From Piromyces finnis finn (lineage: Eukaryota; Fungi; Neocallimastigomycota): a stretch of 64,000 nucleotides of DNA. Numbering within the stretch: the stretch's first letter is position 1; each line of letters opens with the position of its first letter. The translations under genes were made by a program, and so were the position numbers. The DNA lies in contig MCFH01000039.1 of the NCBI GenBank assembly GCA_002104945.1, positions 310,001 through 374,000 on the forward strand, read 5' to 3'. The notes beneath the pieces are model-generated. The model saw nothing but the letters and a program-made list of their open reading frames with translations, did not search any database and had not been told where the DNA came from. Shown piece by piece: positions 15,787-40,200 of this stretch.

Positions 15787-18275
15787 TGTGTATTTATCTG
15801 TTTTGTTTTTGTTTTTGTTTTATTGGTATATATACATTAATAAATATATGGATTGTTGTTTTTGTGTATAAATATCAAAATTTTTATTTTTATTTTTATA
15901 TTATATATCAAATATAATATTTTTTTCCTTGGATGAATTAATAAATTTGAAATTATCAAACTTATTAAATGACTTCTTCTATAATTTCTTTTTTTTTTTT
16001 TTAATAATAAAATAAAAACCTTTATAAAATATTTTTAAATGTTTTAGTTATATATACAACAATAATTATTATTAAAGGATTATTATTTAAAAAAAAAAAA
16101 AATTAAAGGTTTAAACAAGGTAAAAGGGAAACTATTTTGGTATAAATATAAATATCAAAATTATTAATAATTTTTTTTTTGACCATTTTAATATAAAGAT
16201 AATATTAATTATAATTTATTTTATTTTATTTATTTAATAAATAATTAATAAAAATGTATTATTAACATTTTTGTATTAACGAATAAGAGAATGAAATAAT
16301 ATATTATCAATATTGATCATTGTATACAATAAAATTTTTTAATAAACGAATTTTACTTATAATTTAATAAGAATTTGATACAACTTTAAATTTATATTAA
16401 AATATTTTTAACCAATAAATTTAATATCTCATCAAATTATTTAAATTAATTTTTGTAAATGATAATTAATAAAAAAACTTTATTAATTATGAAATAATTA
16501 AAAATTTAATATAATGATCTTCAAAAAAAATAAAAAAAAGGAATTTTTTGGGAAAATCTTTTGTATCATCCTAATTTAATTATAAATTAAAGTTTAATTA
16601 TTAATCACTTTAAAAATTTTAATAATTATAAAAAGTTTAATTTATATTATTTAATTTAATTTATTAATAATTATTATAGATTAAAAATTATAAAAAAACT
16701 TTTTATAAAAATTATACATTCTTTACTTTCCATCTTAATCAATTTAATAAAGTGAGATATTTTCATATAACAAAAAAAAAGTTTATTATGTAAAATTAAG
16801 TAACAGCAATAAAACAAAAAAAGATGAAAAAGAAATAATTAAAGAATTTACAATAGATGATGATAAATAAATTAGGTAAATATATATATACATATATACT
16901 ATTTCAAATATAAAAATTAAAGATTATAAAAAATGTAAAAAAAAAAAAATTTCCGTAATTATCTTTCAATTATTGTACAAATCCTTACCCTAAAAATTAA
17001 ATGATACAAAATGTAAATGTAAATTAAAAATAAATAGTTGTGTAACTTATTTTAATAATAAAATTTTATTACTTAATGATTCATTCTCCATTCACTCGTC
17101 AGGAGGATTAAAAATTTTGTGAATGTCCTCAACAATCAAAAACTTTATTTAAATATAAAATTTAATAATTTTAATAATTTTTTAATTTATTAATTACACA
17201 TTTTATTTATATTTTATTTATGCTTACTTTTAATTTATTTTAATTAATTATTATTAAAATAGTATTCTTCTTTCTTTGGCATTATTATTAAATTCATTGT
17301 AGTATTTATTGTAATTTTATTATTACCTTTTTATGTGATATAAAAATAATGCTAATATTAAAATCTAGGGTAAAAAAATAGTTTAAGACTTTTCTTTAAA
17401 TTGGTGGTAGTGTTGGTTGGTAAATAAATAATATACAAATGGTGGTTGGTGGTAAATAAATAATATACAACTGCTACATAATTTAATAATTATATAATTT
17501 GTTACATTTGTTTTATTGTATTTGTTTTGTGTGAAAAGAAATCAGAAAAAAAAGATGTGAGAATTTCCCAGTTACTAAGCAAAAAATAAATTAAATTTAA
17601 TTTAAAGAAAAAAAAGTTAATATTTATATTATAAAAACATTTACTATGAAATAACGTTTTTAATTTAAATTAATCTAATTCTACAATATCTTTTGTATTT
17701 TGACGGTCGGTGTCAATATGGTCAAATTGTTGAAGAATAATAAGTTTATATGAAGAATAAAACGTAAAGGTACAAATAATGATAGTTAAAAAATTATTAT
17801 GAAATTAAACAATGCTAAAATAAAATAATTAGATTTATGTTTAATTTATACTTATCCTATTAAGAATTTACATAGACCACTTTCATTATTTTATGGTTAA
17901 TTTCCTTTCTTTTGATCAATTTATTTTTAAAGGTATAACACCTTATTACCTAGTTATTTCTTTAAAAAAAAATAGTTTTTGTTTAATACATGTAATTACT
18001 ATTATTCTTAACTCTGAGTCACTTGAAACTTCACTCTTTTTAATATAAGATTCGTTTTTTTTTTTCATTATTAAATATAAATTTACACGAAAAATAAAAA
18101 AGTATAAACTTTATTTATTAATACATTCATCTATATAATGAAATGAATATATCAAAATTTAACAAAAATCTTTTTTTATATATATATATATAATCTTTTT
18201 ACACAAATAAACAATGATGAACTAATTTTCATTAATTTAAAAAAAACGGAATCAAAAATATAATTATAAAATGAT

Positions 18276-18347
18276 TGCCAACTGACGGAATTGAACCACC
18301 GACCTTCGCTTTACAAGAGCGACGCTCTACCACTAAGCCAAGCTGGC
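18276..18347 (-). tRNA. tRNA-Thr(TGT)
   Basis: Reverse complement GCCAGCT...AGTTGGC-A folds as a cloverleaf: anticodon arm TCGCT-CT-TGT-AA-AGCGA, T-loop TTCAATT, and a T-run terminator downstream. Confidence 0.95.
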
Positions 18348-18362
18348 AATTAATTATTCTTT

Positions 18363-18984
18363 TGATAACGGATTGGTAGTTATATTACAACTTTTTAACT
18401 ACTTCTTCTGTTATCTTATATTGTTTTATCTCGACAGCTATTGTACGAGCTTTAACAATATCTACTAGTTTTATTAATTTATTTTAAGCTATTTTATAGT
18501 TTTAATAGTTTTATTATTTAATAATATTTATATAGAATAATAACACCAGATTTATTCTATAAAATATTATTTATTATTAACACAATAATTACAAATTAGA
18601 CAAGTTTAATTTCGTTTTTATATTTTCTTTTATTTATTGTTCTTACGCTCTTTTTAACAATAATTTTTATTATATAAAAAACTTATTTTTGTCTTTTTAA
18701 ATATTATTATGTATTCACTAATTAATTATATTAACTATTATTAAAATTTAACTTATTATTAATAATCTAAGTCTTCTCATTTTCTACTAAAAATTATTAT
18801 TATTCTTTATATTAAAAATTATTTTTATAATTTAACCCAATCAAATATATAAATTTATAAAATATTTGATTTTATGTAAATTATATTTTTATAATAAACT
18901 ATATAAAATTATTTAATAATTATTTTATAATAAAATTTTCTACTAATATCAAATTTATAATATATTTATAATTATTATTTATCA
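18363..18984 (-). repeat. 3' LTR of element A
   Basis: Identical by eye to 28416-29037; PPT AGGGGAGGAAA (minus strand) just inside at about 18988-18998. Confidence 0.92.
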
Positions 18985-19096
18985 AGATTTCCTCCCCTAA
19001 GATACGACTTAGTGGTAGCTGATAAAAGTATTCATAAATAATAATAAATATATAAGTTTTTGATATTTTTATACTAAATATTTAAAAATTTAAATT

Positions 19097-19131
<35 letters not shown>

Positions 19132-19338
19132 TATATGATAAAAATAATATAAAATAAAGTTTATAAAAAAAATGATGAAAAATTTGAAAATTTTTATTAA
19201 TAAAATTTTTTTTTCAAAGAGAAATAAAAAAAATGAAGTGAAATTTTGTTAAATGTCGTAGTGTAAATATTTTTGTGTTTTTATATATTTTTGTAATGTA
19301 ATTGTCGTATTATTTGTATATAAATGTTTAATGTGGTT

Positions 19339-20517
19339 TTATCTTTCTTTAAACTTTGAAAATAGATGAAATTTTGATTTTAATATGTCGAAATAATGTC
19401 GTTTTAAAATTGAAGTTACTGATTTGATATAATCTTTTAGATTGAAAATAATTGAATTTGAAATACTTTCTTTTACACTTTTTATTATACTGAAATATAT
19501 ATTCTTAAACGAATTATTTGATGAATTTTTGATTATATCATTTTGTTTATTTCGCTTTTTTCTTGATTTTAATTTCCTGTTAATATTAATATTCAAATGA
19601 TTATATTTTAGAATTTTACTTTTATTTTTATATATCTTGATTTTGTGGCATTTTTCGTGAATAATTGGCGTTTTTTCTGCTTCATCACGGCCGACAAGAT
19701 TTGACTTATTAATTGAAAATTTAATAAGTGAATCGTTTTTAATTCTTTTTGGAAATTTGCTGAAATTTGAATGAAAAATGTGATATTTTGGATAAAAATA
19801 TTTATTTTTAAATTTGAATAAATGTCGAAATTTAATTGAATATAAAAGTTTGTTTTTATTGTTAAAAGTCGAATTAAAATTTTGAATTTTGATATTATTA
19901 TTAAATGAATTAAATTGAGATTCATTAATATTTGATGGATTGAAACAATGAATCATTGAAATATTTGAAAGATTATTTTTATTTTGTTTAAAATTTGAGG
20001 GACGAGCAACCATAATAGGAGATGAATTAGTTTTCATGTAGAGAGAGTCATCATCAGGATCAATGTATAATCGGTGATTCTTTTGAGATTGACGACCTAA
20101 TATAATATCATAACATGAATCTTCATCTTCTAGAATCCAGAATAATGCATAGATTTTTAAATCACCAAATTTAAGAGTTAAATTAACAGCTTGATTTGTT
20201 GAAATAACTTGTTTGCTAGCTAATTTAAAGAAAGTTCTCTTAAAATGTGTAATATTATGATTTGCTGATATTAAATTAAAGAAGGATTTAGTAATAACAT
20301 TAACATCAGAACCAGTATCTACTAAAACTCGGACAATGTTATTATCAATTGAGCCAATGACAGAAGCAATGTTGATTTTATTAATGACATTAATTTCGTT
20401 ATCTGCTATATTGATAATATCATCATCATTGTCATTATCAGCATCATCATTGTTTTCATTATTTTTATTATTATAATTTTCATTAATGATATTAATAAAT
20501 GAATTAATATCATCATC
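19339..20517 (-). CDS. Element A -1-frame ORF, C-terminal part: retroviral-type aspartic protease plus basic Lys/Asn-rich tail
   Basis: In frame with the upstream part once the insert and one TSD are removed. VLVDTGS and YDIILGR motifs; no stop until 19339. Confidence 0.85.
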   Translation of the reverse strand, partial: DDDINSFINIINENYNNKNNENNDDADNDNDDDIINIADNEINVINKINIASVIGSIDNNIVRVLVDTGSDVNVITKSFFNLISANHNITHFKRTFFKLASKQVISTNQAVNLTLKFGDLKIYALFWILEDEDSCYDIILGRQSQKNHRLYIDPDDDSLYMKTNSSPIMVARPSNFKQNKNNLSNISMIHCFNPSNINESQFNSFNNNIKIQNFNSTFNNKNKLLYSIKFRHLFKFKNKYFYPKYHIFHSNFSKFPKRIKNDSLIKFSINKSNLVGRDEAEKTPIIHEKCHKIKIYKNKSKILKYNHLNININRKLKSRKKRNKQNDIIKNSSNNSFKNIYFSIIKSVKESISNSIIFNLKDYIKSVTSILKRHYFDILKSKFHLFSKFKER

Positions 20518-20522
20518 ATTAA

Positions 20523-21029
20523 TGTAAAGAACTAATGTTCAATAAATAAAAACACAAATATATAAAAAGGAAAATAATAAAAGCAAATAAAAATTTTATT
20601 ATTGAACACTTAACAAAATTATAACAGGTTAGTGTTTAATAATTTTATTTTTATTATAAAATTTCTTTGTTAATAAAAACTCGAATTCAAAATAATTTTT
20701 TGAGAAATTTCACTCGTATTTATATAAATGTTTTTAAAAGTAAATTTATAAAAATTTTACAACTTAATTTTTTAAGCCAATCAGAAATTATCTTCTTTGG
20801 TAAAATTTCGTTATAAAATATTTTAATAATTAAAAAAAAGATATTAATGAGGTTTCGAACTCGAGTAGTTCAAACCAAGGTCTTAGTTACTAACCACTAA
20901 GACAGGTTACTAATTTCTATGATTCGTTACATGGTCCTCCTCCAGGATTCGGATACCAGACGAATCAACTAAATTTATTTGTTACTTTATTATAAAAGAA
21001 ATAATTGAAACGAGTGAATACATTTTGAA

Positions 21030-21073
<44 letters not shown>

Positions 21074-24000
21074 TGAATATTAAATTATAAATATATTTTT
21101 TCATTTTCTATTTTCTATTTTCTATTCTCTTTTTCTCTTATCAATTACTAATTTTTTTTTAAATTAATAACTATTACTAATGTGAATTATTAAAGTTTTT
21201 AATTAGTTCATCGCAGTTTAAATTACTTTCAGGTTCCCAAGATGCTTCTGAAAGCGGATAACCTTTCCATTTTATTAGATATTGAATCTTCCCATAATGC
21301 TTTCTTTTATCAAGTATTTCTTCTACTTCGTATTCTTCTTCTTCATTTACTATTATAGGTGGAGGTGGATCTTTGATTCTTCCAAAACTATCTTCATAAT
21401 ACGGTTCTAGGTTTGAAACATGAACAATTGGGTAAATCTTCAGCGATTTTGGTAATTCTAATTTATAAGTGAGATTAGAGATTTTACTAATTATCCTAAA
21501 CGGGCCAAGTTTCCTAGGATTAAATTTTTTATTTCCTTTATGAATTATCAAGGAGCTATCCAATCATACTTTGTCACCAGTCTTGAATGTCGGAGGTTCT
21601 TGTCTATACTTGTCGGCATATTTCTTTTGAACTTGGATGGCCTTCTTTAAGTTTTCTTTTAGTTTCTCCATTAGGTCTTCAAAGTCTCTTGTAAACTCTT
21701 CAGCTCTTGGAACATTCGTTTGGTCAGGAATTACCGGAGAGTATTTTGGGTGATAACCATAATTTAGGAAGAATGGTGAGAATTTTGTTGAGTCTTGAAC
21801 AGCATTATTGTAACTGAATTCTGCCAATGGAAGAAAGTTGATCCAGTTTGTTCCTTTATAATTAGAAAAGCATCTTAAATATTGTTCAACAACGGAGTTT
21901 ACCCTCTCCGTTTGGCCATTGGATTGATGATGATATGGTGAAGAATATTTAACATTGACGTCCAAAGATTGACAAATAGATTTCCAAAATTTCGAAGTGA
22001 ATTGCGCGCCTCTATCGGAAATAATTTCAGAGGGGAGACCGTGAATTTTGAAAATATAATTCAAAAAAGCAAAAGCAGTATCAGAAGCAGAAGGAATACC
22101 TTTAAAGGGAATGAGGTGGCACATTTTAGTAAGGCGGTCAACTACAACAAGAATAGTGTTAAATCCATCCGAAGGAGGGAGGTCAGTAATGAAATCCATA
22201 GAAATAGAAGCCCAAGGATGGTCACTAATCTCAAGGGGTTGAAGTAAACCATATGGTTTATGACGAGAAGGCTTGGAGCGGCAACAAATCTCGCAAGATC
22301 GGATATAATTCTTAACATCAATAGAAATGGATGGCCACCAAAAGTCACGAGAGATCAAAGAAATAGTTTTGCGGATACCAAAATGACCGGCAGAGGGGGA
22401 ATCATGACAGAGTTTCAAAACGGAGGGACGGCATTTTAAAGGGACATAGATTCTACTATCAAAAAGAAGAAAACTATTACTAAGGGAGAATTTATTACTT
22501 TGTGGATGTGGAGCTGGGAGATTCTTATTTTCAAGAAAATTGCAAATGTCAATGTAAAAAGAGTCGTTCACATATTCAGATAATATTTCATCATTAAGAG
22601 AAGAAATGGAACAAATCAAAGCGCAGAAATTCTCAGGGCGTAAAACCGAAAAAGGAGCATCAGAAGGAAGAGAGGAATCCATATAATCAGGTCTTCGTGA
22701 AAGCGCATCAGGTTTACCATTAGATGAACCAGAGCGGTAGAGAATTTTAAAGTTAAATTCGGAAAGGAAAAGGGCCCAACGAACAAGACGTTGTGACATT
22801 TTTTCCGGTTTCTTTTGATATAGTAAGTTTCGATGATCTGAATAAATAGTAAACGGGGTTAAAGCACCTTTGAGAAAATGTCGCCAAGTTTCAAGAGCAT
22901 TAACAATAGCTAAAAGTTCTTTATCGTATATAGGATAGTTTCTTTCAGCGGAAGTAAGAGATCTTGAATAGAAAGCGACAGGATGGATCATTTTATCATC
23001 AGGAGATTTTTGAGACAGAACTGCTCCTATAGCAAAGTTGCTAGAGTCGGTTTCAACAATAAAGGGAAGATCACGATTTGGGTGAGACAGGATGGGAGCA
23101 GATGAAATTAATGATTTAATGGTATTAAATGCATCAAGAGCTTCAGAGGAAAAATCAAATTTAACGTTTTTACGAAGTAGTCTGTGAAGGGGTTGTGCAA
23201 CTTTGGCAAAATTAGGAATAAACCGACGATAGTAGTTGGCTAGGCCAATAAAAGATTGAACTTCCTTGACACTGGACGGAACTGGCCAATTAATAATAGC
23301 AGAAACTTTATTGGGGTCCATATGTATACCTTCAGAGGATATCCGATGACCAAGGAAATCAATAGAGGAAACAAAGAATTCACACTTTTCAAGCTTAGCA
23401 TAAAGACCAGCATTTCTTAAGCGATCCAGGACTTCGATAACGTGCTTAATGTGGGATTTATGGTTTTCAGAAAAAATAATTAAATCGTCAATATATGAAT
23501 AAACAAAAATCCCTAGAATATTTTCCAGAACATCATTGATAAAATGCTGAAAAACAGCCGGGGCGTTTTTCAGTCCGAATGGCATTACCAGGTATTCAAA
23601 GTGGCCGAATTTGCAGGTGAAAGCTGTTTTATATTCATCACCCTTTTTGATTCGGACCAAATTATATGCTGATCGTAAATCCAATTTTGAGAAGATTTTC
23701 GCTTTACCAAGATGCTCTAGCATATCTTGAATCAGAGGTAGAGGATAGGAATCTCTAATGGTAATTTTGTTGAGTTCCCTATAATCTTGACAAAGACGGA
23801 GTTCACCATTCTTTTTAGGAACGAAAAGTACAGGCGCACCAGCAGGAGATTTGGATTTCCTAATGAAACCCTTTTTGAGGTTTTCATCGATATAATCCTT
23901 CAAAACTCTTGTTTCTTCGTCTGTTAGTGGGTAGATTGGTCCATAAAATAGCTTGGCATTTTCGATTAGGTTTATTTGGCAATCATAAGGACGATGAGGT

Positions 24001-26651
24001 GGTAATTGAGCAGCAGAAGATTCGCTAAAGACGTCCATATATGATTCTAATTCCTTCGGAAGTTTAGTAGTAGGATTTGAGTCTTTAAAAGAGTTTTTTG
24101 GTGAACAAGAATCAACTTTAGAAAGAGATATATTAGAAGCCATGACAGTACAAGTCTCTTGTGATAAAGGATCGTTAACAGATTCATTGTTAATTAAGAC
24201 AGATTTAGAACGATTTTCTTTGGGATTACGAGAATGAGATAACTTAGAATTTGAAAAAGAAGATTTAGGTTTGTCAATAAAAATAGGCAAAGAAACGGAA
24301 GAAGAGTTATTGCAATCAGTAGAAAAAACAGAAGTTTCCTGATGGAATTCGGGAACATTCGAAGGGAGAGTCATACAATGATCCAAGCAATATGAAGAAC
24401 CAAAGGATAATTTATTATTTTCAAAGTCAATACTTGGATTATGTTCCTTAAGCCAACGTAGACCTAGAATACAAGGATATACAGGTAGATCAGTAACGTA
24501 AAAGACAGTACGGCATAGGTGATCCATGTAGCGAAGATTAAGAAGTGGAGTAACTCCGAACAGTTTTTGGCTACCACCAATACCGAATACGTTGGGTAAA
24601 TCTTCTTCATAGTGGTAGGGAATATTGTGATCGTTGCAATAGTCGGCATCTATTAGATTAAGTGTAGAACCGGAGTCTATAAGAATTTTTGTGTCTAGTT
24701 CAAACGATAATTTAAAATTTGAGGTTACCCTATCTTGTTGATTTTTCTTGGAATTGGTAGAATTATTTTGTAGAGAAACTAAAGATTCGAATGCTGAGTT
24801 TTTATTTCTTCTCTTATGACAATCTTTCAGTTGGTGTCCTGGAGATCCACAATAGACACATAAGTTTTCCTTACTTCTTCTTTCTTTTTCTTCCTTGGAT
24901 AACGGACCAAAGTATCTTTTCTTCTTGGGATGTTCTTTTAGATTTGTGGAAGCCTTTCTGGAGCCATTGCTGGAATTAGAACTTGGTCCCTTAGTATTTT
25001 TGTCAAAAAATAATCCCCTGGTAGCAAGTCTGGAGTCTATTCTAGCTGCAATAGTTTGGAGGGAAAACAAATCTCTTGGTCCTGGGAACATCTCTAATAT
25101 CTTCATTGCAACTTCTTGGTTGAGCCCAGCGATAAAAGCATCCATCTTAGCCTCTTCATTCCAGTTAGATTCATCAGAGTATTTGTTAAATTCAAGGATG
25201 TATCCTCTGATGCCGCCCAAACGATGTTGCTTGAGAGTACGTAGCATTTGATTGGCTACGTAGACTGCATCATTGTTCCCGTAGAATGCCTTTAGTCTTT
25301 CCTTGAATGCTTGGTAGTTGGTCAGACATGGATCATGGTTGTCAATAAGCGTAGCGGCCCAATTTAATGCATTTCCATAAAGGCGAGAAATCAGGTAGAT
25401 AACCTTGCTCTCTTCATCTTGATATCTTTCGGGATAAAGGAGAAAAACAAGTTCTATTTTGGCTAAGAAACCTTTGAGATATTTTCTGTCTCCTGCGAAA
25501 CCGTCTTTTAGTGAGGCGTTATCAAATATTTGTCCTTCCATTAAAATTAAAAAAATATAATTGTTTGAAAATAAAAATTATGTAAATAAGATAAAGTTAT
25601 GTTTGAAGAAATTAAGAAAGAAAAAAAAAATTAAATCTTTATTATTATTTATTGATTAAAATATTTTAAATATAGACAAAGAGTCAAATTAAATAGTATT
25701 GGACCATCAAATATTTAATTTTATTAGTATTCAATACTAGGTCCCTTGTAGCTCTTTGTTGATAACGTAGATATTATCAATTGTTAATATTGGAAATGAA
25801 AATTTTCAATAAAAGGAATTAACGGTATTAGTTTCTTTATTGTCACTTACTTAATTAAGCGGAAAGAAAAAAATAGGTTTAATTCCCCGATTATTAATAA
25901 TATCTAAACAACAAAGTATTACGTATAGGTGTCCAACTATCCACGCTAAGGGAGGTATTGAATCCTAACTTCTTTGTTATTTTAATATTTTTTCAAAAAT
26001 AATAAATAAAATTTAATTTTATTTATTAAAAGTAGAAAACGTTTTATTAGAAAATGAATTTTTTCTTTATTATTAAATTAAGCGTCCTGGCGCTCCCCTT
26101 ATAATAACTGTGGGTTTTACTTTTGTTTTCAGTACCCTTATTGTTAAAATAAGCTTCACTGACTTACTTAATTTTTTAATAAATTAAAAATTCTTCCTTT
26201 TTTAAACACTAAGGTGTTATTATATATTTTAGGAGTTTTTATTGTAAAGAACTAATGTTCAATAAATAAAAACACAAATATATAAAAAGGAAAATAATAA
26301 AAGCAAATAAAAATTTTATTATTGAACACTTAACAAAATTATAACAGGTTAGTGTTTAATAATTTTATTTTTATTATAAAATTTCTTTGTTAATAAAAAC
26401 TCGAATTCAAAATAATTTTTTGAGAAATTTCACTCGTATTTATATAAATGTTTTTAAAAGTAAATTTATAAAAATTTTACAACTTAATTTTTTAAGCCAA
26501 TCAGAAATTATCTTCTTTGGTAAAATTTCGTTATAAAATATTTTAATAATTAAAAAAAAGATATTAATGAGGTTTCGAACTCGAGTAGTTCAAACCAAGG
26601 TCTTAGTTACTAACCACTAAGACAGGTTACTAATTTCTATGATTCGTTACA
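20523..26651 (-). mobile_element. Full-length chromovirus (Ty3/Gypsy with chromodomain) nested in element A
   Basis: 409-bp LTRs at 20523-20931 and 26243-26651, identical by eye; 5-bp TSD ATTAA (20518-22 and 26652-56); PPT GGAGGAGGA next to the 3' LTR. Confidence 0.96.
21177..25541 (-). CDS. Chromovirus single-ORF gag-pol (gag, Zn knuckle, PR, RT, RNase H, IN, chromodomain) with one in-frame TGA at 21564-21566
   Basis: CVYCGSPGHQLKDC, LIDSGS, YIDD, ETDSS, HX6H/CX2C, SDRG, LGPFRI, and EEEEYEVEEILDKRK...YLIKWKGY chromodomain. The two supplied ORFs are adjacent in the same frame (GDKV*LDSS). Confidence 0.93.
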
Positions 26652-27470
26652 ATTAAGATCCATATTTTGAATGGCGTTTATTTTCCGAACGTCATTTGGA
26701 TCAAGCTTTAAACCTTTGGCACAAAGTCTTCTGATGATAGGACTGACTGCAAGCAATTGTGCAAAAGAGATACCAGCATTTGTATTATTAAGGGCATCAA
26801 AAATATTATATTCTTTATTTTTGCCCAACATGACAATAGAACGTAGGAAGTCATAATAGTTGCTTTTGGGAGACTTTTTGCTATCTATAACTTCTTCTAA
26901 TTCGTCCTGTTTACTTGGTATATCTGGACCAATTCTTCTTTTATTTCTGGTTTCTTTATTTTTCATCTTAGCAGAGGAAATATTCTTGCCTGCAATTACC
27001 GAGGGGTCTAAGATGTCTAGGCGGGAAGTAGTGGTATGAAAATTTGAATTTTTCTCATTACGAATTTCTTGCTGTTCTTTCATCTGAGTGGCCTTTGTGT
27101 GTATTGGTAATGGATTTTCTCGAAGTTTCTTTTTCTTCGACTGAGTCACGTGATCCTCATCATCACTTTCATCACTTTCTTCAGAACTTTTTCTCTTGAA
27201 TGCATAAATAAGGTTTTCGATGTCCTTATCATCGACTGTATTTGTCACGTGATCACGTGTAACGTAATCCTTATCATCTTCATTGATTGGATCATCCACC
27301 AAAGGGTTAGAGATTTTTTCTTTAGAATTTGGAAATTTTTTTGTTTTATGGAAATCACGTGTATCATCAACATAGATTTGCTCATTAATGTTGTTGATGT
27401 TGTGGGTTTGGTTATTATCAATTTTGGAGTTAGAAGGGGAAGATTGAGAACTTCCCCCATTTAATTTAAA
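26652..27470 (-). CDS. Element A -1-frame ORF, N-terminal part (interrupted by the chromovirus)
   Basis: Open from slippery TTTAAAT (27464-27470) to the TSD at 26652. LRENPLPIHT and ISFAQLLAVSPIIR resemble the pre-protease region of element C. Confidence 0.8.
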
Positions 27471-28315
27471 TGGTTTTGGGTTTTGAGGAGGGTAGCTATG
27501 ATTTTGTTCACATCGGTCATTTCGTTTGGGCAGAAGCGGGCATCATGTCCTTTCTGGTTACAACGGTGGCAGATATGAATTTTCATCTGGGCAAAGCTTT
27601 TGGTCAAAGCATCCAGATCTGATTCTTTAGCTTCTTCTTTAGTAGTCTTTTCATTATCAGTACTACTATTATTTTCGTTATTATTATAAGAGGTTTTATC
27701 TTCAACTTCTATTTTTCTCTTATAATAATTATTTTTGTTTTGAGTTCTTTTATTGGGTACATATTCATCATCACTTTCATAAGCAGATAGAAGCTCATCT
27801 GCTTTAATAGCAATGACCATAGCATCCTTTAAAGTTTTTGGTTGTTTGTTAATAAGAGAATTTAATATAGAAGTTCTCCTATTAAAAGCTTTTGTATAAA
27901 GAAAAACAAGTCTTTCTTCAGAAGGCTTGTCCCTTTCTTTAATTTCTTTCAAAAGGTCGTTAAAAGAACGGTTAAATTCTCTAACAGAGCTTTTGTTTAC
28001 TTTTATTTTTTCTAACTTATTTAGGTTTCTATTAGAGGTTTTATCATCCTCAAATAAGTTAGATATTTTATTGATAAATTCATTATAAGATAGGGATCTA
28101 TCTTCATAATAAATATCACTACAAAGATCCTTTGAGTTACCGGTAGTAGCAAGCAAAGCAATTCTCTTCTTTTCTTTTTCAGAAAGAGCTAAGTCTTCTA
28201 AGATATCTTCAAGTTCCATTTTCCATCTGAAGAACTTAGTATCTTTCTTGCCAAGAGGGCTTATTTCTTTAGCCATACTAGCGGCTCTTTCAAAATTGTT
28301 TTTATTTTCAGTCAT
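27461..28315 (-). CDS. Gag of element A (zinc knuckle CHRCNQKGHDARFC)
   Basis: Intact 284-aa ORF just after the PBS with a CX2CX4HX4C knuckle. Confidence 0.88.
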   Translation of the reverse strand: MTENKNNFERAASMAKEISPLGKKDTKFFRWKMELEDILEDLALSEKEKKRIALLATTGNSKDLCSDIYYEDRSLSYNEFINKISNLFEDDKTSNRNLNKLEKIKVNKSSVREFNRSFNDLLKEIKERDKPSEERLVFLYTKAFNRRTSILNSLINKQPKTLKDAMVIAIKADELLSAYESDDEYVPNKRTQNKNNYYKRKIEVEDKTSYNNNENNSSTDNEKTTKEEAKESDLDALTKSFAQMKIHICHRCNQKGHDARFCPNEMTDVNKIIATLLKTQNHLN

Positions 28316-28403
28316 ATTTAGTAAATAAATAAGATAATTATACTAAATATACTAATTAATAGGAATTATTTAAATTTTCGGCTTTCCCACGGGACGACTG
28401 AGG

Positions 28404-28413
28404 TTCTCCACCA
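28404..28413 (-). promoter_or_regulatory. Primer-binding site of element A (TGGTGGAGAA, probably tRNA-Ala)
   Basis: 2 nt from the LTR; complementary to a tRNA 3' end ...TTCTCCACCA, typical of eukaryotic tRNA-Ala; the same 10-mer is in element C. Confidence 0.7.
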
Positions 28414-28415
28414 CT

Positions 28416-29037
28416 TGATAACGGATTGGTAGTTATATTACAACTTTTTAACTACTTCTTCTGTTATCTTATATTGTTTTATCTCGACAGCTATTGTACG
28501 AGCTTTAACAATATCTACTAGTTTTATTAATTTATTTTAAGCTATTTTATAGTTTTAATAGTTTTATTATTTAATAATATTTATATAGAATAATAACACC
28601 AGATTTATTCTATAAAATATTATTTATTATTAACACAATAATTACAAATTAGACAAGTTTAATTTCGTTTTTATATTTTCTTTTATTTATTGTTCTTACG
28701 CTCTTTTTAACAATAATTTTTATTATATAAAAAACTTATTTTTGTCTTTTTAAATATTATTATGTATTCACTAATTAATTATATTAACTATTATTAAAAT
28801 TTAACTTATTATTAATAATCTAAGTCTTCTCATTTTCTACTAAAAATTATTATTATTCTTTATATTAAAAATTATTTTTATAATTTAACCCAATCAAATA
28901 TATAAATTTATAAAATATTTGATTTTATGTAAATTATATTTTTATAATAAACTATATAAAATTATTTAATAATTATTTTATAATAAAATTTTCTACTAAT
29001 ATCAAATTTATAATATATTTATAATTATTATTTATCA
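28416..29037 (-). repeat. 5' LTR of element A
   Basis: 622 bp, TG...CA ends, followed on the minus strand by a PBS. Confidence 0.92.
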
Positions 29038-29041
29038 CTTT

Positions 29042-29801
29042 TGATACAAGATGCATAGAAAAATATAATATTTTAAATATTTTATGAATAATATCTAATC
29101 CTTTTATAAATTGTATATCAATTACTAATGATAATAATAATTAAACTATATTAGTATAAATTATTATGACGCAAATGTTACACATACATTAGAATAATTA
29201 GTTACACAAGAAAGGAAAAGATATAAAAGAGAGTGTTAAAGCAGAAGATATCAAGAGAGAGAACTTTTCATTTATAAATAATATTTGATATTTTAGTTTT
29301 AAGTATTAGTTTTATTTTATTTTATTTTTATATTAATAGTTTTAGTTTAAGTTAGTTTTAGGTTAATAATTACGTATTTAGTATTTATTATATTTCCTTC
29401 AGTTTAAATATTAGTTATAAAAGAAAAGAATATTTATTGTTTATTTTTACTATTTCAGAAAAGTTATATTTTATCATTAATAATACTTTCATCAACATAT
29501 TTTTATATTTACACATTATATTTAACTATTTATATTTATTCAATAATAACTTTCGATCCTATTAGTATTGAATGTTATTAATGTTATAATCATAATAATA
29601 ATAATAATTAAATAAAGAATCTTTAAACCAAAATCTATTTAATTATATTATTATAAAATTTATTATTTTTATTATTTATTTTTATTATTATAAAATAGAA
29701 ATAAATACAATATTAACTAATATATTATTCATATATCATTCCCTATTGCTAACGTTCATAATTATATTTTATTTATGGTGTTTTTGAAATATATTGCATC
29801 A
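29042..29801 (+). repeat. 5' LTR of element C
   Basis: 760 bp; differs from the 3' LTR by about 3 substitutions and one 3-nt indel. Confidence 0.92.
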
Positions 29802-30059
29802 TAAAATTTGGTGGAGAATCCGGGCGTAGCAATATTGAATAATATGAAACATTAATAGTATTATTTCTATTCTAATTATATTTATTTTTTTTTTTTTTAT
29901 TATTTTTAATTAAAATAAGTTCTTTTATATAAATAAAACTTTCTACTATAAAACTATTAAATATACACAAATATTATATATATATATATAAAATTATTAT
30001 AACAATAATATATAAGAAGTTATTATATAAATTTATTTTAAAATAAATAAATAATTAAA

Positions 30060-31517
30060 ATGGTTGACGCCACTAAAGTAAAAAGAGACATTCCATACCT
30101 CTGCGATTATGGAAAGGATATTGATTCCTGGATGGAGGATTTTATAAGTGTCATGGAGATCCATGATATACAAGAGCCCTCTAGAATATTTGTGTGGTTA
30201 AAAGTTGCCGTTGAAGCAGATATCAAGAATGTTTTGAAATCTTTATGTACCTCTCATAATAACGTTAAAAGGTATCCTACTTATAAAGAGGTACAATCTG
30301 CTATTGAAGATTATCTGGAAATAAAGCCAGGGGATAAATGTTCAGTATTAAAAACATTAAAAATTAAACAAAACGAAACTATAAAAAGCTTCAACTATAA
30401 ATACTTAACTCTTTACCACCGCTTGGAAAGAGATTTTATGAAAATTATTTCTGTGGATGACTATTTAAACTCTATTAAGAAAAGAGTTTATCCACACTCC
30501 CAAGTTATATTAGCCGAATGTGAAACATTATCTGAAGCTTTTAAAGTTGCTGAAAAGGCTGAGAAAGCCGAAAGAAGAACCATAGAAAGTACTGAAACTA
30601 ACAATATTTCTATGGTATACCAAAATACAAAAAATACTCGAAATGTTTTGTTAGACCATCCGTTATATAGAGGATTAGTAGATGATGATAATGTTAATAT
30701 TAACCATAGCAATTTTAATAACTCTTATTCAAATTATGTACAAGAAAAGCCTATCGGAAGATCCTATCCAGGTATCCCAAGAAATTATGAAAATGTGTAT
30801 TTTAATAATAGTAACTTCCGGAGTATCAGATGTTACTATTGCAAGCAAATGGGACATAAAGCTAGTGAATGCCCAAATAAAAGAGAAAGAAATAATTTCA
30901 ATAATTTCAATAATTTTAATCAATTTAATAATCAAAGAAATTCTTATAACAGATATGGAAATTTATATAATAATAATGATAACAATAATTACAACAATAA
31001 TAGTTATTTAAATGGATTTAATACTAATACTAATAACAACAACCAAAAGGATAATAGAAACATTAATGAAAATAATTATATGGATTATCATCATAAAAAT
31101 AACTATAATAATATGAATAACAATTATTATATGTACACCAATAATGATTATAAGAAAGGTAATTTTAATCCAAATGGAAATTACAATTATAATAAAAGTA
31201 ATAATATTAATAGCTACAATAATTATAATAATACTATTGGATATAATGGATATAATAATAATGGTTTTAATAGTTATAATAAAAACAACACAATGAATAA
31301 TAATACATTTAATAACGTCAGTAATGTTAATAAGAATAATATGAGGAACAACATTAATGATAGTGATAACAGGAACAATATTAATAATAATTACCCTAAT
31401 CAATTAAATAATCAATATTATAATAATTATTATAATAAGACCTTACCAGAAAATAATTACAATAAAGCAACCAAAATAAATTTAAACAATCCATCTGAAT
31501 CAAATAATTTAAACTAG
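30060..31517 (+). CDS. Gag of element C (zinc knuckle CYYCKQMGHKASEC, Asn-rich C-terminus)
   Basis: 485-aa ORF after the PBS. Confidence 0.9.
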   Translation: MVDATKVKRDIPYLCDYGKDIDSWMEDFISVMEIHDIQEPSRIFVWLKVAVEADIKNVLKSLCTSHNNVKRYPTYKEVQSAIEDYLEIKPGDKCSVLKTLKIKQNETIKSFNYKYLTLYHRLERDFMKIISVDDYLNSIKKRVYPHSQVILAECETLSEAFKVAEKAEKAERRTIESTETNNISMVYQNTKNTRNVLLDHPLYRGLVDDDNVNINHSNFNNSYSNYVQEKPIGRSYPGIPRNYENVYFNNSNFRSIRCYYCKQMGHKASECPNKRERNNFNNFNNFNQFNNQRNSYNRYGNLYNNNDNNNYNNNSYLNGFNTNTNNNNQKDNRNINENNYMDYHHKNNYNNMNNNYYMYTNNDYKKGNFNPNGNYNYNKSNNINSYNNYNNTIGYNGYNNNGFNSYNKNNTMNNNTFNNVSNVNKNNMRNNINDSDNRNNINNNYPNQLNNQYYNNYYNKTLPENNYNKATKINLNNPSESNNLN

Positions 31518-31741
31518 TTTATGGGAGAAGGACAACTCCCAGTAATCAAACCAAGTTTGGCAATTCTTTTGATTCAAATGATGAAATAAATGAAAATATT
31601 ATGTATGTTCATAATAATAATAATGAACTAAATGGGAATAATTATTTCTATGATAGTCATAATGTTAATTTTAACAACAATCCTAATACTAATTTTATTT
31701 ATAATGATACTAATAATAATAATAATAACAATTCTTATGAT

Positions 31742-31810
<69 letters not shown>

Positions 31811-34800
31811 TCTTATGATATTAATAATAATAATAATTATATATATGACAATAATACTTATGTTTATGATATTAAACACAATGATAATAATTATGATATT
31901 AGTGATAATAAGGATAACTATATATATAATGAAAATAACTATGATGTTTATGCTACTAACTATAATAATCATGATGATAATAATAATAATAAAGACTTTA
32001 ACATAAATTGTGAAAATATTTATAATAATATCAACGAATATAAATGTAACAATATTAATAATATTAATAAAGACAATGATAAGTACATGGAAAACAACAA
32101 TAATGTTTATGAGAAAGATTATGGAATATTAAATAATTCTTGTGGGTGTGATAGAAGTTGTACATCTAATAATAATAATATGATAAGAAATTGTAAGACA
32201 TTAAATATAAAAGAACAATATTATAATAGACAACAAGAAAATAAGAATGAGTACTGCCATATAGGTGAAGATAATGAAGTGGTAGCTGTTACTCAGAAGA
32301 ATGAAAAATTAAATAAGTCTAAAAGGTTAACACCATTTAAAGATACCGAAAGAAAATTAAAAGAAAACCCTATTCCTTTTAGCACACCTGCTTTAAAATT
32401 AGCTAAACGGAAAATGAACAATAATAAAACTAATAAAAGCGTAGCTATGGATGAAGATACCACATTAGAGGAAATTATTGAAACCAATACTATGAATGAA
32501 AATAAAAGTCCAGATAATAATCCAAAGAAGGAAAAACAGGTATCATTTTCTGAAGATGTGAAATCAATTAAAGAATCAGAAATAATAGTTTTAGATGATA
32601 ATATTACCAAAGGAAATAACAAAAGTGATAAAGTCTTAGAAACCACTAATGATACTAGTAAAACAAATAAATTAAATTACTTAGATTTGTCTGTTATAAA
32701 TAAACCCAATATTTCAAATGCAAAAAAATTAAGTAAACAAGAAAAATTAAATGAAATAAAGAATAATTTAAATGATAGTATAAAAGAAATCCAATCTCTG
32801 AGCAAAACTAGTAATCCAAAATTAGAAAAACATATTAAAATAATGGAATTAATTGATGATTTCAAAATCAATGATTTAATAAAAGATGTTGCCTCTACTG
32901 ATGTAGTAACAAAGTTAGGTTATCTTTTAGATTTATTTCCGAAATTTAGATCCGAATTTATTAAAGCTTTGAAATTAAAAGAAATTGATAAGAAATCTCT
33001 AATAAATGTTATGACTGTTATTGGAAGTCATAAAGTCATTAAGGTTAATGGATTTATAGAAAATCGACCATCGGAAATATTCTTAGATTCTTGTGCTAGT
33101 GTAAACCTAATTACTACTGCTGCACTAAAGAAATTCAATATCAAGAAATTACCAGTTGGTAGAGTATCTGAAAAAATATTTCAAGTGTACTCAAATAGTT
33201 CTATTGATTCAAATATCTATGAACTTAAGATTACAATTGGAAATCACACATTTACAGATCACTTTAGAGAGGTAGAAAAAGATGATATCTTTGATGTACT
33301 TGTTGGAATTGCTACATTGAAAAGAAATAATTTTATTTTAAATTTAGTTGACGATTCTTTATTACATGTTAATAATAATAATGAATGTATTAAATTAACA
33401 CATTTACTCTATGATGTAAATTTTAATAATTCAAATAATATTAATAAAGATGATGATAAAAACTATATAGAGTACGAGTTGAGTAAATTTAATAGTGTGT
33501 GTTCTAATAATAATGCTCCTGATAAAATTTCCAATTTAAGAGTTTCTGATTTTATAAATAACTGTGAAAGTAATATATCTTATGTTCCTAATAATATTAC
33601 TACTAAAAATAGTTATAAATCTGATGATAATGCTTTATTTAAAAATTCCTGTTCTAGTCCACTTCCTGTTTTTATATCAATTGTCAAAGAAGATATCTCT
33701 TCTAATATTTCTAATAATAATGGTAGTGATAAGAAGCAGCTTATTATAAATGATATAATAAATGAAATACCTATTGATAGTAGAAATAATATAAAGCAAC
33801 TATTTTCTGAGTATAGAGATGTAGTGGCAATAAAGACAGATGATTTAGGTCATTCTAAATTAATGCCACATAGAATAAATTTAGTTCCTGGAACCCAACC
33901 TATTAAACAACATGCATATAGATTATCTAAAGTGCAAGCTGATGCATTAAAAAATGAATTAATTAAGCTTATTGATAATAAATTGATTGTTCCTTCTAGT
34001 TCGTCATGGTCATCCCCAGTAGTCTTAGTACCTAAGAAGAATAATCAAATAAGAATGTGTGTTGACTATAGAAAGGTAAATAATTGTACTATAAAAGATG
34101 CATATGCACTTCCCTTGATTGATGATATTTTATACTATGTGGGTAATGCTACTATTTTATCTACTATTGATTTGTTTTCGGGTTATCATCAAATACCTAT
34201 GCATCCTGATGATAGAGACATAACTTGCTTCACTACCATATATGGAAATTTTAATTTCCAAGTTATGCCTTTTGGACTTTGTAATGCACCGGCCACTTTT
34301 CAACGTGAAATGAATCGTATATTTTTTGATTTAATTGGTGTATGTGTATTTGTTTATATAGATGACCTTGTTATTTATTCTAATTCATTGGAGCAACATT
34401 ATGAAGACATCAAAAAGGTTTTTAAAATTTTACATAATAACGGTTTAAAAATTAATGTAGAGAAATGTCATTTTTTTAAAGAAGAAGTGGAACTACTTGG
34501 TCACACTCTTTCTACTAAAGGTATTAAACCTATTGATTCTAAAGTTCAAGTTATTATTAATTGGCTACCGCCTAAAAATATTAAACAATTACGTTCGTTT
34601 TTAGGTGCTATTGGTTATTATAGAAAGTTCATTTCTAACTTTGCTCAAGTAGCCAAACCTTTATATGATCTAACAAAAAAGAATGTTACATTTGAATGGA
34701 ATGATATTTCTAATAATGCTTTTGATACTCTAAAAAATAAATTAGCTATCGCACCTATTCTTACTCCTCCAGATTTCAATAAACAATTTATAATACGTAC

Positions 34801-35179
34801 TGATGCATCTAAATCAGGAATAGGTGGTGTACTTATTCAATTAGATAATGACGGCTTTGAAAAACCTCTCTATTTTGAAAGTAGAACATTATCTAATTCA
34901 GAATTAAATTATAGTATTACTGAACTTGAAGGATTAGCTGCTTTTTACTGTGTGTGTAAATTCAAACCATTTATAACTGGCAACAATCTTGAAACATTGT
35001 TGTATACTGATCATAAACCTTTGGTCTATATTTTTAATAGTAAAGAACCCTCATCAAGTCGTCATGTTAAATGGATAACAGAGTTCAGCATTTTGAAGGT
35101 TAAAGTCTTATATGAAGAGGGGAGGAAGAATGTTATAGCTGATGCTTTATCAAGACTTCAAAGTAAATCAGGAAATGAA

Positions 35180-35231
<52 letters not shown>

Positions 35232-36835
35232 TAAATGAAAAATATGATAGCAGAAAAATCAATAATATAAAGGATATAATGGAAGAAAATATAATTAAAA
35301 ATAAGAAAGAAGAATGTTCATTATTTATAAATGATAATACAGCAAATAATAATAATATAAATAATGATTTATTTAATAATACTAATATTCCAGATAATAA
35401 ACTTGGAAAAAATTATGTTAATAATTATAATATTAATTATGATAAAAATAACAAACTGAATGATATGATATTAATTGGAAATTATAATGAAAATTGTAAA
35501 ACAGATTTTGATTATATAAATAATGGAAATGATAATAATATAGAAAGTGATAATAATAGTGATATTTGTAAAGACAATAATAATGTTATGATAAATATTA
35601 ATGAGAATAACAACAAAAGAAATATGAATGATAATTATCTATATTCAAATACGAATAATAATAGAAATATGCTAAACAATTTTATTGAAGATTTTATAAC
35701 TAAAAGATTTGTATACATTGATGGAGTTCAATATTATAAACAAAATGATTTATTAAGAAAAGTTATTACAAATAGTGATGAAAAATGGAAACTAATTAAT
35801 GAAGCTCACTCTATTGGTCATGAAGGAACATACAAGACATATCACAGACTAAGAAGAGATTATTTTTGGAAAGGTATGACAAAGGATATTAAATTATTTA
35901 TTAAATGTTGTCATAAATGTCAAACACGTAAACCGCAACCAACTAATATGTATCCGGAAGATTTAGCAACTCCTCCAGGTTTACCATTTAGTAGAGTTGG
36001 TTTAGATTTAATAGGTCCGTTATATACCACTGCTAGAGGAAATAAATATATAATCGTATTGGTAGATTATTTAACCAAATGGGTAGAAGCAGAACCTTTA
36101 ATGAAAACGGAATCTGAGGATGTAATAAGATTCCTTACTAATGTATTTTCAAGACATGGTATACCAGAAGTATTAATTACAGATAATGGACCACAATTCA
36201 TATCTGATAAAACAAAAGCTTTTCTAGATTTACATGATGTATATGTTCATTATATTAATACCTATCATCCAGCCTCAAATGGAGAAGTTGAAAATAGAAA
36301 TAGAGAAATATCAAAATACTTACGATTATTAGGAAAGAAAAATAAAGATTGGGATGAAACACTACCTAGTGCATTATGGGCCCTTAGAACTGCAAAAAAC
36401 GAAGTTACAAAATTTAGTAGTTTTGAACTCCTATACGGAAGAAGAGACCTCCAACCATTTGAACTTAGTATCAATGTTGATAAAAGGTTAAAAGAAGAAA
36501 ATGAAGAAGAATATTATATTAGGAAATTTATAAATCATAACCAATGGATTAAAGAAGCAATAAATAATATTGAAACAGCTAATGAGCTATGGAAAGATAG
36601 AAGAAGACAAATCAAAAGACTACGTAGTGAATTTAAGCCTGGTGATTTAGTTCTAATTAGAAATTTTAATAGAAAAAAATTAGATCCTTATTATCTTGGA
36701 CCTCTAAAAATTGTAAAACAACAACTTAATACTGTAACAGTATGCGATCCAATTACAAATGATATTGCAGAAAGAAATATTCATTTAAAGAATGTAATTC
36801 CCTATATTAGTAGTTTTATTGAAATGAAACATTAA
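31508..36835 (+). CDS. Pol of element C (PR-RT-RNase H-IN), reached by -1 frameshift
   Basis: The -1 frame is open from the heptamer at 31508 into the 1744-aa ORF. FLDSCAS, YIDD, TDAS, DALSRL, HX3H/CX2C, TDNG and YLGPLKI (GPY/F-like) motifs; no chromodomain. Confidence 0.92.
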
Positions 36836-36888
36836 TGAAAAATACGACGACTTCAAGGGACGAAGTCTTATTTAAAGTGGGGGCCTCC

Positions 36889-37651
36889 TGATACAAGATG
36901 CATAGAAAAATATAATATTTTAAATATTTTATGAATAATATCTAATCCTTTTATAAATTGTATATCAATTACTAATGATAATAATAATTAAACTATATTA
37001 GTATAGATTATTATGACGCAAATGTTACACATACATTAGAATAATTAGTTACACAAGAAAGGAAAAGATATAAAAGAGAGTGTTAAAGCAGAAGATATCA
37101 AGAGAGAGAACTTTTCATTTATAAATAATTTTTGATATTTTAGTTTTAAGTATTAGTTTTATTTTATTTTATTTTTATATTAATAGTTTTAGTTTAAGTT
37201 AGTTTTAGGTTAATAATTACGTATTTAGTATTTATTATATTTCCTTCAATTTAAATATTAGTTATAAAAGAAAAGAATATTTATTGTTTATTTTTACTAT
37301 TTCAGAAAAGTTATATTTTATCATTAATAATACTTTCATCATCAACATATTTTTATATTTACACATTATATTTAACTATTTATATTTATTCAATAATAAC
37401 TTTCGATCCTATTAGTATTGAATGTTATTAATGTTATAATCATAATAATAATAATAATTAAATAAAGAATCTTTAAACCAAAATCTATTTAATTATATTA
37501 TTATAAAATTTATTATTTTTATTATTTATTTTTATTATTATAAAATAGAAATAAATACAATATTAACTAATATATTATTCATATATCATTCCCTATTGCT
37601 AACGTTCATAATTATATTTTATTTATGGTGTTTTTGAAATATATTGCATCA
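36889..37651 (+). repeat. 3' LTR of element C
   Basis: 763 bp, preceded by the PPT. Confidence 0.92.
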
Positions 37652-40107: not shown

Positions 40108-40200
40108 GCTCGTGTAGCCTAGAGGTTTAAGGCGTCGTGCTTATAAGGGTGATCCTCTTATGCAACGCGAAGATCGCGGGTTCGACCCCCGCCATGAGCA
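40108..40200 (+). tRNA. tRNA-Ile(TAT) with 19-nt intron (40146-40164)
   Basis: Acceptor stem GCTCGTG/CATGAGC, anticodon arm TCGTG-CT-TAT-A...A-CGCGA, T-arm GCGGG-TTCGACC-CCCGC; resembles yeast intron-containing tRNA-Ile(UAU). Confidence 0.93.

Follow-up and report, generated by a model that had tools for sequence, protein, structure and literature searches.

Element A of Piromyces finnis, very probably a copy of a semi-autonomous Gag-protease lineage of Ty3/gypsy retrotransposons

The TR-GAG elements of plants are non-autonomous long terminal repeat (LTR) elements whose only open reading frame (ORF) is gag. RLG_Sabrina_SA and RLG_WHAM of wheat are GAG-Pro "semi-autonomous" Ty3/gypsy elements, each with one GAG-Pro ORF and no reverse transcriptase (RT) or integrase (IN), that are mobilised by RLG_Wilma and co-evolve with it (Wicker et al. 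2021, PMC9744471). RLG_Quinta, which is found in Triticeae centromeres and is tens of millions of years old, has an intact GAG, along with a domain whose function is not known, but no protease (PR); it reaches its centromeric target via an integrase CR domain, and the divergent GAG and conserved flanks of RLG_Quinta and RLG_Cereba are explained by the authors as the outcome of template switching (PMC11302176). The subject of this report is element A, an LTR element of the anaerobic gut fungus Piromyces finnis finn, which lies in a 64,000-nucleotide stretch (the window) of GenBank assembly GCA_002104945.1 (contig MCFH01000039.1, positions 310,001 to 374,000 of the forward strand); all positions below are those of the window. 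Element A is very probably a copy of a semi-autonomous Ty3/gypsy lineage, called A-short here, that uses the enzymes of a longer autonomous form, A-long, and whose own Gag and protease are under selection.

Element A spans 18363-29037, with all of its genes on the minus strand. Its 3' LTR (18363..18984) and 5' LTR (28416..29037) end in TGATA...TATCA and are identical at 622 of 622 positions. The target-site duplication (TSD) CTTT flanks the element at 18359..18362, on the side of a tRNA gene, and at 29038..29041, where the same bases double as the left TSD of a neighbouring autonomous LTR element, element C. A polypurine tract (PPT; AGGGGAGGAAATCT) stands directly against the 3' LTR, read from the sequence as TTAGGGGAGGAAATCT on the element strand (18985..19000, minus strand), and a TGG-initiated motif resembling a primer-binding site (PBS), TGGTGGAGAACC, lies at 28402..28413 (minus strand), separated from the 5' LTR by 2 nt (A, G). 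A nested chromovirus and one copy of its ATTAA duplication (6129 + 5 bp) must be subtracted to give the length of element A itself, 4541 bp. The ends TG...CA, the short TSD, and the PBS-like motif and PPT beside the LTRs assign element A to the Ty3/gypsy LTR retrotransposons, as do the capsid type and, in A-long, the domain order PR-RT-ribonuclease H (RNase H, RH)-IN. Because its LTRs are identical, the window copy is judged to be very young.

The gag gene (27461..28315 including its stop, coding 28315..27464, minus strand) encodes 284 amino acids (aa) with a Ty3_capsid domain (E 6e-11) and a CCHC zinc knuckle, and shows 0 nt differences from that of a sister copy, L003. Its 3' end (..cca ttt aaa tta a..) belongs to a putative -1 frameshift cassette at 27436..27470, in which the heptamer TTTAAAT (27470..27464; T TTA AAT in the zero frame) directly precedes the gag stop TAA (27463..27461) and is followed by the hairpin GGGGAAG-N8-CTTCCCC (27457..27436), all on the minus strand. 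The cassette has the parts expected of a -1 site, namely an X XXY YYZ heptamer, a spacer (6 nt, the expected range being 5-9 nt) and a downstream structure (a G+C-rich stem of 7 bp); the z-score of the 106-nt fold at the site is only -1.7. From heptamer through hairpin the young short copies and the long copies are identical, and the old short copy differs by one spacer base. The cassette would be expected to direct -1 ribosomal frameshifting in vivo. ORF2, in the -1 frame, has 665 aa in total (273 + 392 codons). Its proximal piece (26652..27470, minus strand; 273 codons from the slippery site) is a conserved pre-protease region with no Pfam match, and its distal piece (19339..20517, minus strand; 392 codons plus the stop) continues in phase after the nest. 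The motifs VLVDTGS and DIILGR mark a retropepsin (aspartic protease) domain at 20092..20355 (minus strand; DTGS and IILGR), predicted to be active, and 354 bp separate the ORF2 stop (19339-19341) from the 3' LTR. The two ORF2 pieces of the window copy were searched separately, and the uninterrupted ORF2 of L003 was also used as a query; the protease is the only Pfam match in ORF2, with no RT, RNase H or integrase. An element of about 4.5 kb with identical LTRs, a clean 4-bp TSD, PBS and PPT, a gag, a -1 frameshift signal, an ORF of about 665 aa with a DTG and IILGR protease that ends about 350 bp before the 3' LTR, and none of the remaining pol domains, is what the preliminary description had reported, and measurement bears it out. 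Its word "intact" holds in part: gag, the frameshift signal and both ORF2 pieces are open and in phase, but the nest splits ORF2 upstream of the protease and, since protease and frameshift site are thereby parted, this copy is disabled.

A search of the assembly (56.46 Mb, 232 contigs, about 15-35% G+C) shows at least 40 near-identical copies of the A-type LTR among 296 first-look candidates, paired at two spacings that give elements of 4.5 kb (A-short) and 6.6 kb (A-long). Aligned with the long copy L001, the short copy L003 has 754 bp in place of the 2794 bp of the long form, between flanks common to both. The short-specific 754-bp segment, which follows the protease, occurs in at least 28 copies at 98% identity or better, plus older fragments at 82-95%; the long-specific pol occurs in about 9 copies at 97% or better, and A-short therefore outnumbers A-long about 3 to 1. 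Sixteen full-length sister copies of A-short, 4521-4548 bp long, were fetched. All but one (15/16) have their own matching 4-bp TSD, with flanks that differ, and most of their LTR pairs are 0-1 bases apart. Twelve of the 16 have a gag of 284 aa, TTTAAAT-TAA, and an ORF2 of 665 aa with DTG/ILG, ending ...SKFKER. In A-long (6.5-6.6 kb), gag encodes 289 aa and ORF2 about 1356 aa; the latter has PR at residues 335-422, RT at 571-730, RNase H at 794-927 and IN at 1008-1174. Three fetched A-long copies are uninterrupted, two of which share identical flanks. (The A-long copies L036, at G000:C160:568500-578499, and L037, at C101:695500-705499, have identical LTRs, flanks and TSD, and would represent one insertion seen twice, through segmental duplication or duplication in the assembly.) By lacking RT and IN, sharing PBS, PPT and LTR termini with A-long, and having many independent insertions, A-short corresponds to a non-autonomous partner in the sense of PMC11302176, and with intact gag and protease ORFs and RT and INT absent it corresponds to a GAG-Pro "semi-autonomous" element in the sense of PMC9744471.

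A-short is no fresh deletion of present-day A-long. The two forms are 99-100% identical over nt 1-1140 (the 5' LTR and gag aa 1-140), 50-95% from nt 1140 to the junction (76% in the protease region), and 97% over the final 240 bp ahead of the 3' LTR and the LTR itself. Their LTRs are 93-99% identical, depending on subfamily, and the A-long protein is 81% identical to ORF2 residues 1-450 of A-short. No copy joins a short-type protease to RT; all matches at 89% identity or better are short-type copies or fragments. Old short sequences are also present. One, C191, is 93% identical to the young copies and split by about 20 kb of later insertions; fragments occur at C13 (82-92% by piece) and C187 (about 89%). 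Both C191 and C13 cross the same junction between protease and tail as the young copies. Because the LTRs of C191 are only 2.6% diverged from each other, most of its difference predates its insertion, and it is a member of a separate, older short subfamily.

Selection was estimated from simple Nei-Gojobori site counts. Between short and long forms, gag has a ratio of nonsynonymous to synonymous rates (dN/dS, or omega) of 0.04-0.14 and ORF2 one of 0.07-0.23; dS reaches 1 or more in several segments. Within the short lineage, the shared part of ORF2 in young copies and C191, polarised on the long form, has nonsynonymous to synonymous changes of 10:16 and 24:27 on the two short branches where about 4:1 is the neutral expectation (omega about 0.18, p 6e-15), and omega for gag is 0.21. 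In a comparison of three short copies, the counts for the protease on the branch to the young ones are 3:16 (p 3e-9, omega about 0.05), and within the short lineage the omega of the protease is 0.05-0.16. Gag and protease have been kept by purifying selection inside the short lineage, at omega about 0.05-0.2, and the tail that follows the protease more weakly. A dN/dS below 1 in gag and protease had been named in advance as the sign of a propagating lineage; it is found both between the forms and within the short one.

The two forms have not stayed apart. In a tree of LTRs, short and long copies are interleaved in three subclades: short L003 and the window copy with long L001/L002/C197, short L011/L016/L017 with long L034, and short L012/L029 with long L036-L038. 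Despite these LTR subclades the internal regions of A-short are 99-100% identical among themselves, and the long copies L034 and L036 are likewise 99-100% identical internally while their LTR variants differ. The youngest long subfamily (L001, G000:C13:940352-946927; L002, C159:175111-181691; and L008 plus L039 on C197) is itself recombinant: its first ~1.1 kb, comprising the 5' LTR and gag aa 1-140, is of the short lineage, and what follows matches the L036 type at 99-100% identity. Every short copy, old or young, has this type of gag 5' end, whose identity to the other long type is 83-90%. This mosaicism indicates that A-short and A-long have exchanged LTRs and a gag segment repeatedly, at least once in the direction from short to long. 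Template switching between co-packaged RNAs would be the simplest explanation. The preliminary description had pictured a satellite that might build and mature a particle of its own; the recombinants suggest particles common to short and long RNAs. One short copy, L010 (G000:C217:15973-20826), is flanked by a matching AAAA duplication although its LTRs belong to two subfamilies and mismatch at 13 positions; a heterozygous RNA pair or recombination between elements may have given rise to it.

Both forms also share a target register. The 3' LTR of element A ends 14 nt upstream of the 5' end of a tRNA-Thr(UGU) gene (18275..18348, minus strand; ARAGORN). Among 20 family copies examined, 11 lie upstream of a tRNA gene at a distance of 13-17 nt (14-17 nt for short copies, 13 and 16 nt for long ones), and they do so in either orientation. 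The remaining copies mostly adjoin the end of another LTR element. Integration in trans by a helper predicts that A-short, without an integrase, should be found at the exact tRNA register of that helper, as is seen.

The tRNA-Thr gene is one boundary of a 22-kb stack of LTR elements (18275-40200), the other being a tRNA-like gene at 40108-40200(+). From tRNA-Thr, a gap of 14 nt leads to A-short; then come CTTT, element C, CTTT again, a stretch of about 0.8 kb, and a third A-type LTR (38472-39047 plus 40043-40094), which is split by an insert of ~1 kb and separated by 13 nt from the tRNA-like gene. Element C (29042-37651) has 760-bp LTRs that are 99.2% identical. Because CTTT flanks C on both sides, C must have inserted first, A using the same four bases on the tRNA side afterwards.

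Taken together, we propose that A-short began with an autonomous ancestor that lost RT and RNase H and whose integrase decayed into a basic tail of 217 aa. The lineage would encode Gag and, by a -1 frameshift at TTTAAAT and its hairpin, a fusion of Gag, pre-protease region, protease and tail, and it would keep every cis signal of A-long: LTR ends, PBS-like motif, PPT and frameshift cassette. Reverse transcription and integration by the enzymes of A-long would place it in the same register, 13-17 nt upstream of tRNA genes, and the packaging of short and long RNAs together would produce recombinants in both directions. We infer the trans-mobilisation and the co-packaging from sequence. Because purifying selection acts within the short lineage, its own Gag and protease appear to matter for its spread. 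The window copy would then be a very recent insertion into the CTTT used earlier by C, disabled afterwards by the chromovirus in its ORF2.

Several points weigh against this explanation. Frameshifting, protease activity and packaging are all deduced from sequence, and the Pfam match of the protease (gag-asp_proteas, E 1.5e-4) is below the curated cutoff, as it is in the autonomous form. A strong A+T mutation bias is outside the model behind the site counts given above. The exchange of LTRs and gag could instead have happened at the DNA level, by gene conversion among copies that are stacked at the same tRNA loci. Of the three youngest A-long copies examined, two have one break each in ORF2 and the third has a nested insertion. 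No tRNA gene with a 3' end that fits the PBS-like motif came out of two pattern searches of the genome, which returned 0 matches in one case and, in the other, 3 non-tRNA matches against 1 for the control. An internal tRNA site or a fragment of a tRNA might serve as primer at TGGTGGAGAA, the PBS-like core that A and C have in common. Self-priming from the LTR in the manner of Tf1 is unsupported, as the LTR holds no complement of 8 nt or more to the PBS of element A.

Other accounts of the locus can be weighed with the same data. The window copy could derive from a full-length element by one recent deletion, belong to no lineage, and be intact merely through youth. Its identical LTRs agree with that, as does the 99-100% internal identity of the copies, since open frames in sequences so alike prove little by themselves; but the same junction and stop recur in at least 28 copies, which differing flanks and TSDs exclude as segmental duplications (15 of 16 have their own TSD), older short copies at 89-93% identity exist, two of them spanning that junction, the protease region differs by 24% from that of all long copies, and omega on the short-lineage branches is about 0.05-0.2. 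A single deletion is therefore scarcely credible. The preliminary description had set it against a propagating lineage, to be recognised by full-length copies of the same structure and 3' stop and by an autonomous element with A-type LTRs, and to be abandoned if most A copies carried full pol and this one a unique breakpoint. The short structure is in fact the majority form (at least 28 copies to about 9 long ones), 12 of the 16 fetched copies share it with its stop, and the autonomous element exists, at 6.5-6.6 kb with PR-RT-RH-IN. That description had also listed features shared with element C, and C could be the helper that supplies RT and IN. The two do have in common the 10-mer TGGTGGAGAA (29809-29818 in C), the 4-bp TSD, indeed the same CTTT upstream of the same tRNA gene, the termini TGATA...ATCA, and the design of heptamer, stop and hairpin. 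The shared pre-protease motifs that had been reported did not hold up, BLASTP finding no match at E<=1e-3 between ORF2 residues 1-450 of A and the pol of C, and the 760-bp LTR of C has no colinear similarity to that of A. A-long has near-identical LTRs, the same PBS, PPT and frameshift cassette, and 81% ORF2 protein identity, and it has recombined with A-short: recombinants of A-short with A-long are abundant, and those with C are absent. On this evidence A-long is the likely helper; it is very improbable that C fills that role, and C would be at best a secondary helper, as the very ends and the PBS core are shared.

What A-short does to its partner, and what its tail is, admit of other readings too. 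The Ty1 p22 protein and dominant-negative Gag proteins poison or dilute the products with which they co-assemble, and A-short might in the same way be mainly a factor for interference or copy-number control, its Gag and Gag-PR-tail co-assembling with the products of A-long. It does encode a Gag-Pol-like fusion without the enzymes, it outnumbers the helper about 3 to 1, and the N-terminal 140 aa of Gag are interchangeable between the forms, making co-assembly plausible. Against this, A-short is mobile, multi-copy and LTR-flanked, with young insertions, and its own propagation explains the selection; nothing points to a benefit for the host or to a fixed single-copy locus, and interference would be a side effect of parasitism with no separate function. 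We regard control of copy number as quite unlikely to be its main role. Somewhat less unlikely, though still doubtful, is that A-short and A-long are more than parasite and host and make up one recombining retroelement of two components, bound by co-packaging and comparable to a multipartite virus, in which labour would be divided: the abundant short form would donate most capsid and protease as well as LTR and gag sequence, and the rare long form RT, RNase H and the tRNA-targeting integrase. The tail (19342..19992, minus strand; 217 aa after the junction with the protease, of low complexity) is very basic, with 47 K+R, 11 D+E and a net charge of about +36, and is rich in K, N, I, S and F. It might be a newly acquired functional domain, an adaptive novelty of the lineage rather than a relic: it is free of stops at 19% G+C, as were 0 of 20000 shuffles, its omega is about 0.36 (p 0.003; nonsynonymous to synonymous changes 23:14 over all branches, for the first 118 tail codons of three short copies), and a terminal helix of about 55 residues is predicted, although by a poor model (AlphaFold2 on protease plus tail with no alignment gave a mean predicted local distance difference test score of 37.5 and only this C-terminal helix, too poor for a fold search). 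The composition, however, is what A+T-rich drift would give, and no relative appeared in Pfam, in metagenome contigs, in a word search of 5.8 billion proteins (residues 440-665) or in the ESM Atlas, where the top score was 0.81 with low recognition. Moreover, tail residues 1-108 are colinear and in frame with residues 933-1030 of A-long ORF2, the end of RNase H and the lead-in to the integrase H2C2 finger. The core of this match has 45% identity over 38 aligned positions, and Asn and Arg stand where A-long has the two zinc-binding histidines. In composition-corrected BLASTP the match has E 0.002, and the local score was reached in 2 of 2000 shuffles (p about 0.001). Only the pairwise match to A-long detects the tail, which a profile of integrase N-termini from four other families did not. 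Probably the tail is what survives, in decayed form, of the end of RNase H and the lead-in to the integrase zinc finger, still translated and under weaker constraint, and a new domain is unlikely; the two can be reconciled if a relic has taken on a modest role.

The chromovirus that splits ORF2 is a separate element (20523..26651, minus strand) with the order gag-PR-RT-RH-IN-chromodomain, carrying capsid, RT, RNase H, integrase, SH3 and chromodomain. Its LTRs (20523-20931 and 26243-26651) are 409 bp long and identical, and its 5-bp TSD ATTAA is at 20518-20522 and 26652-26656. One in-frame TGA (21564-21566; …GAC AAA GTA TGA TTG GAT…) stands between the integrase core and the SH3/chromodomain; despite the identical LTRs, it would be either a fresh mutation or a read-through stop.

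The pre-protease region (26652-27470, ~270 aa) contains the block …NTNAGI[ST]FAQL..SP..R.LC.KGLKL…, which has no Pfam match. A word search with ORF2 residues 1-450 returned seven protein relatives at 36-51% identity (P0001-P0007); the block is kept in four of them, at 46-51% identity, and less exactly in the relative at 36%, and is an uncharacterised domain of the gypsy clade to which element A belongs. The five relatives inspected were mostly fragments running into RT, with no clear form limited to gag and protease among them, and a scan of metagenome contigs found no relative.

Non-autonomous LTR elements are usually taken as passive passengers. A-short has kept a capsid, a Gag to Gag-PR ratio that frameshifting would set, and a protease under purifying selection, and it does so in a compact case: a 56-Mb genome in which short copies number about 28 and long ones about 9, with a trade in LTR and gag sequence, and with tRNA targeting that would be inherited from the helper. 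The A family is a small system for asking why a retrotransposon parasite needs a protease of its own. For annotation, the ORFs of A-short should not be labelled host genes.

Among known systems, Ty3 of Saccharomyces cerevisiae is autonomous and uses a +1 frameshift; A-short resembles it in the Ty3/gypsy capsid, in a gag/pol frameshift design and in integration just upstream of tRNA genes, in the region where Pol III starts, and we know of no gag-PR-only Ty3 lineage. Through trans-complementation, mouse IAP I-delta-1 and ETn/MusD, LTR elements with deletions or no coding capacity, exceed their full-length helpers both in number and in transposition. A-short would be complemented in trans as they are, but they are vertebrate endogenous retroviruses with different deletions, and to our knowledge there is no evidence in them for long-term selection on a retained protease. 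We found no paper on retrotransposon families of Piromyces finnis, and no such fungal element turned up in the literature consulted, in which no dedicated search for fungal cases was made. TR-GAG elements, which the preliminary description had named, keep gag as A-short does, and A-short adds the frameshift, the pre-protease region and the protease.

The wheat GAG-Pro elements are closer, and because they were already described, the novelty implied for element A had been overstated (PMC9744471). Like RLG_Sabrina_SA and RLG_WHAM, A-short has GAG and protease and no RT or integrase, its copies outnumber the helper, its LTR subfamilies co-evolve with an autonomous partner, and it can be read as a contributor of structural protein (PMC9744471). 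The likeness is one of organisation, and an independent fungal origin is to be expected. As in the pair RLG_Quinta and RLG_Cereba, PBS, LTR termini and target specificity are common to both partners, the non-autonomous one has an intact GAG and a further domain, and GAG has diverged between conserved flanks, with recombination around gag (PMC11302176); but unlike RLG_Quinta, A-short has retained its protease and targets tRNA genes. Unlike the wheat elements, it has Gag and protease in two frames joined by a -1 frameshift cassette, a putative translated remnant of RNase H and integrase, tRNA-targeted integration, and an anaerobic gut fungus as host; it goes beyond the wheat case in that purifying selection within the lineage, and transfer of LTR and 5' gag from short to long, can be seen directly. 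The organisation, then, is already known; what is new is the host group, the -1 frameshift cassette, the putative translated integrase relic and the tRNA targeting, together with direct evidence of selection within a deleted lineage and of transfer from the short form to the long.

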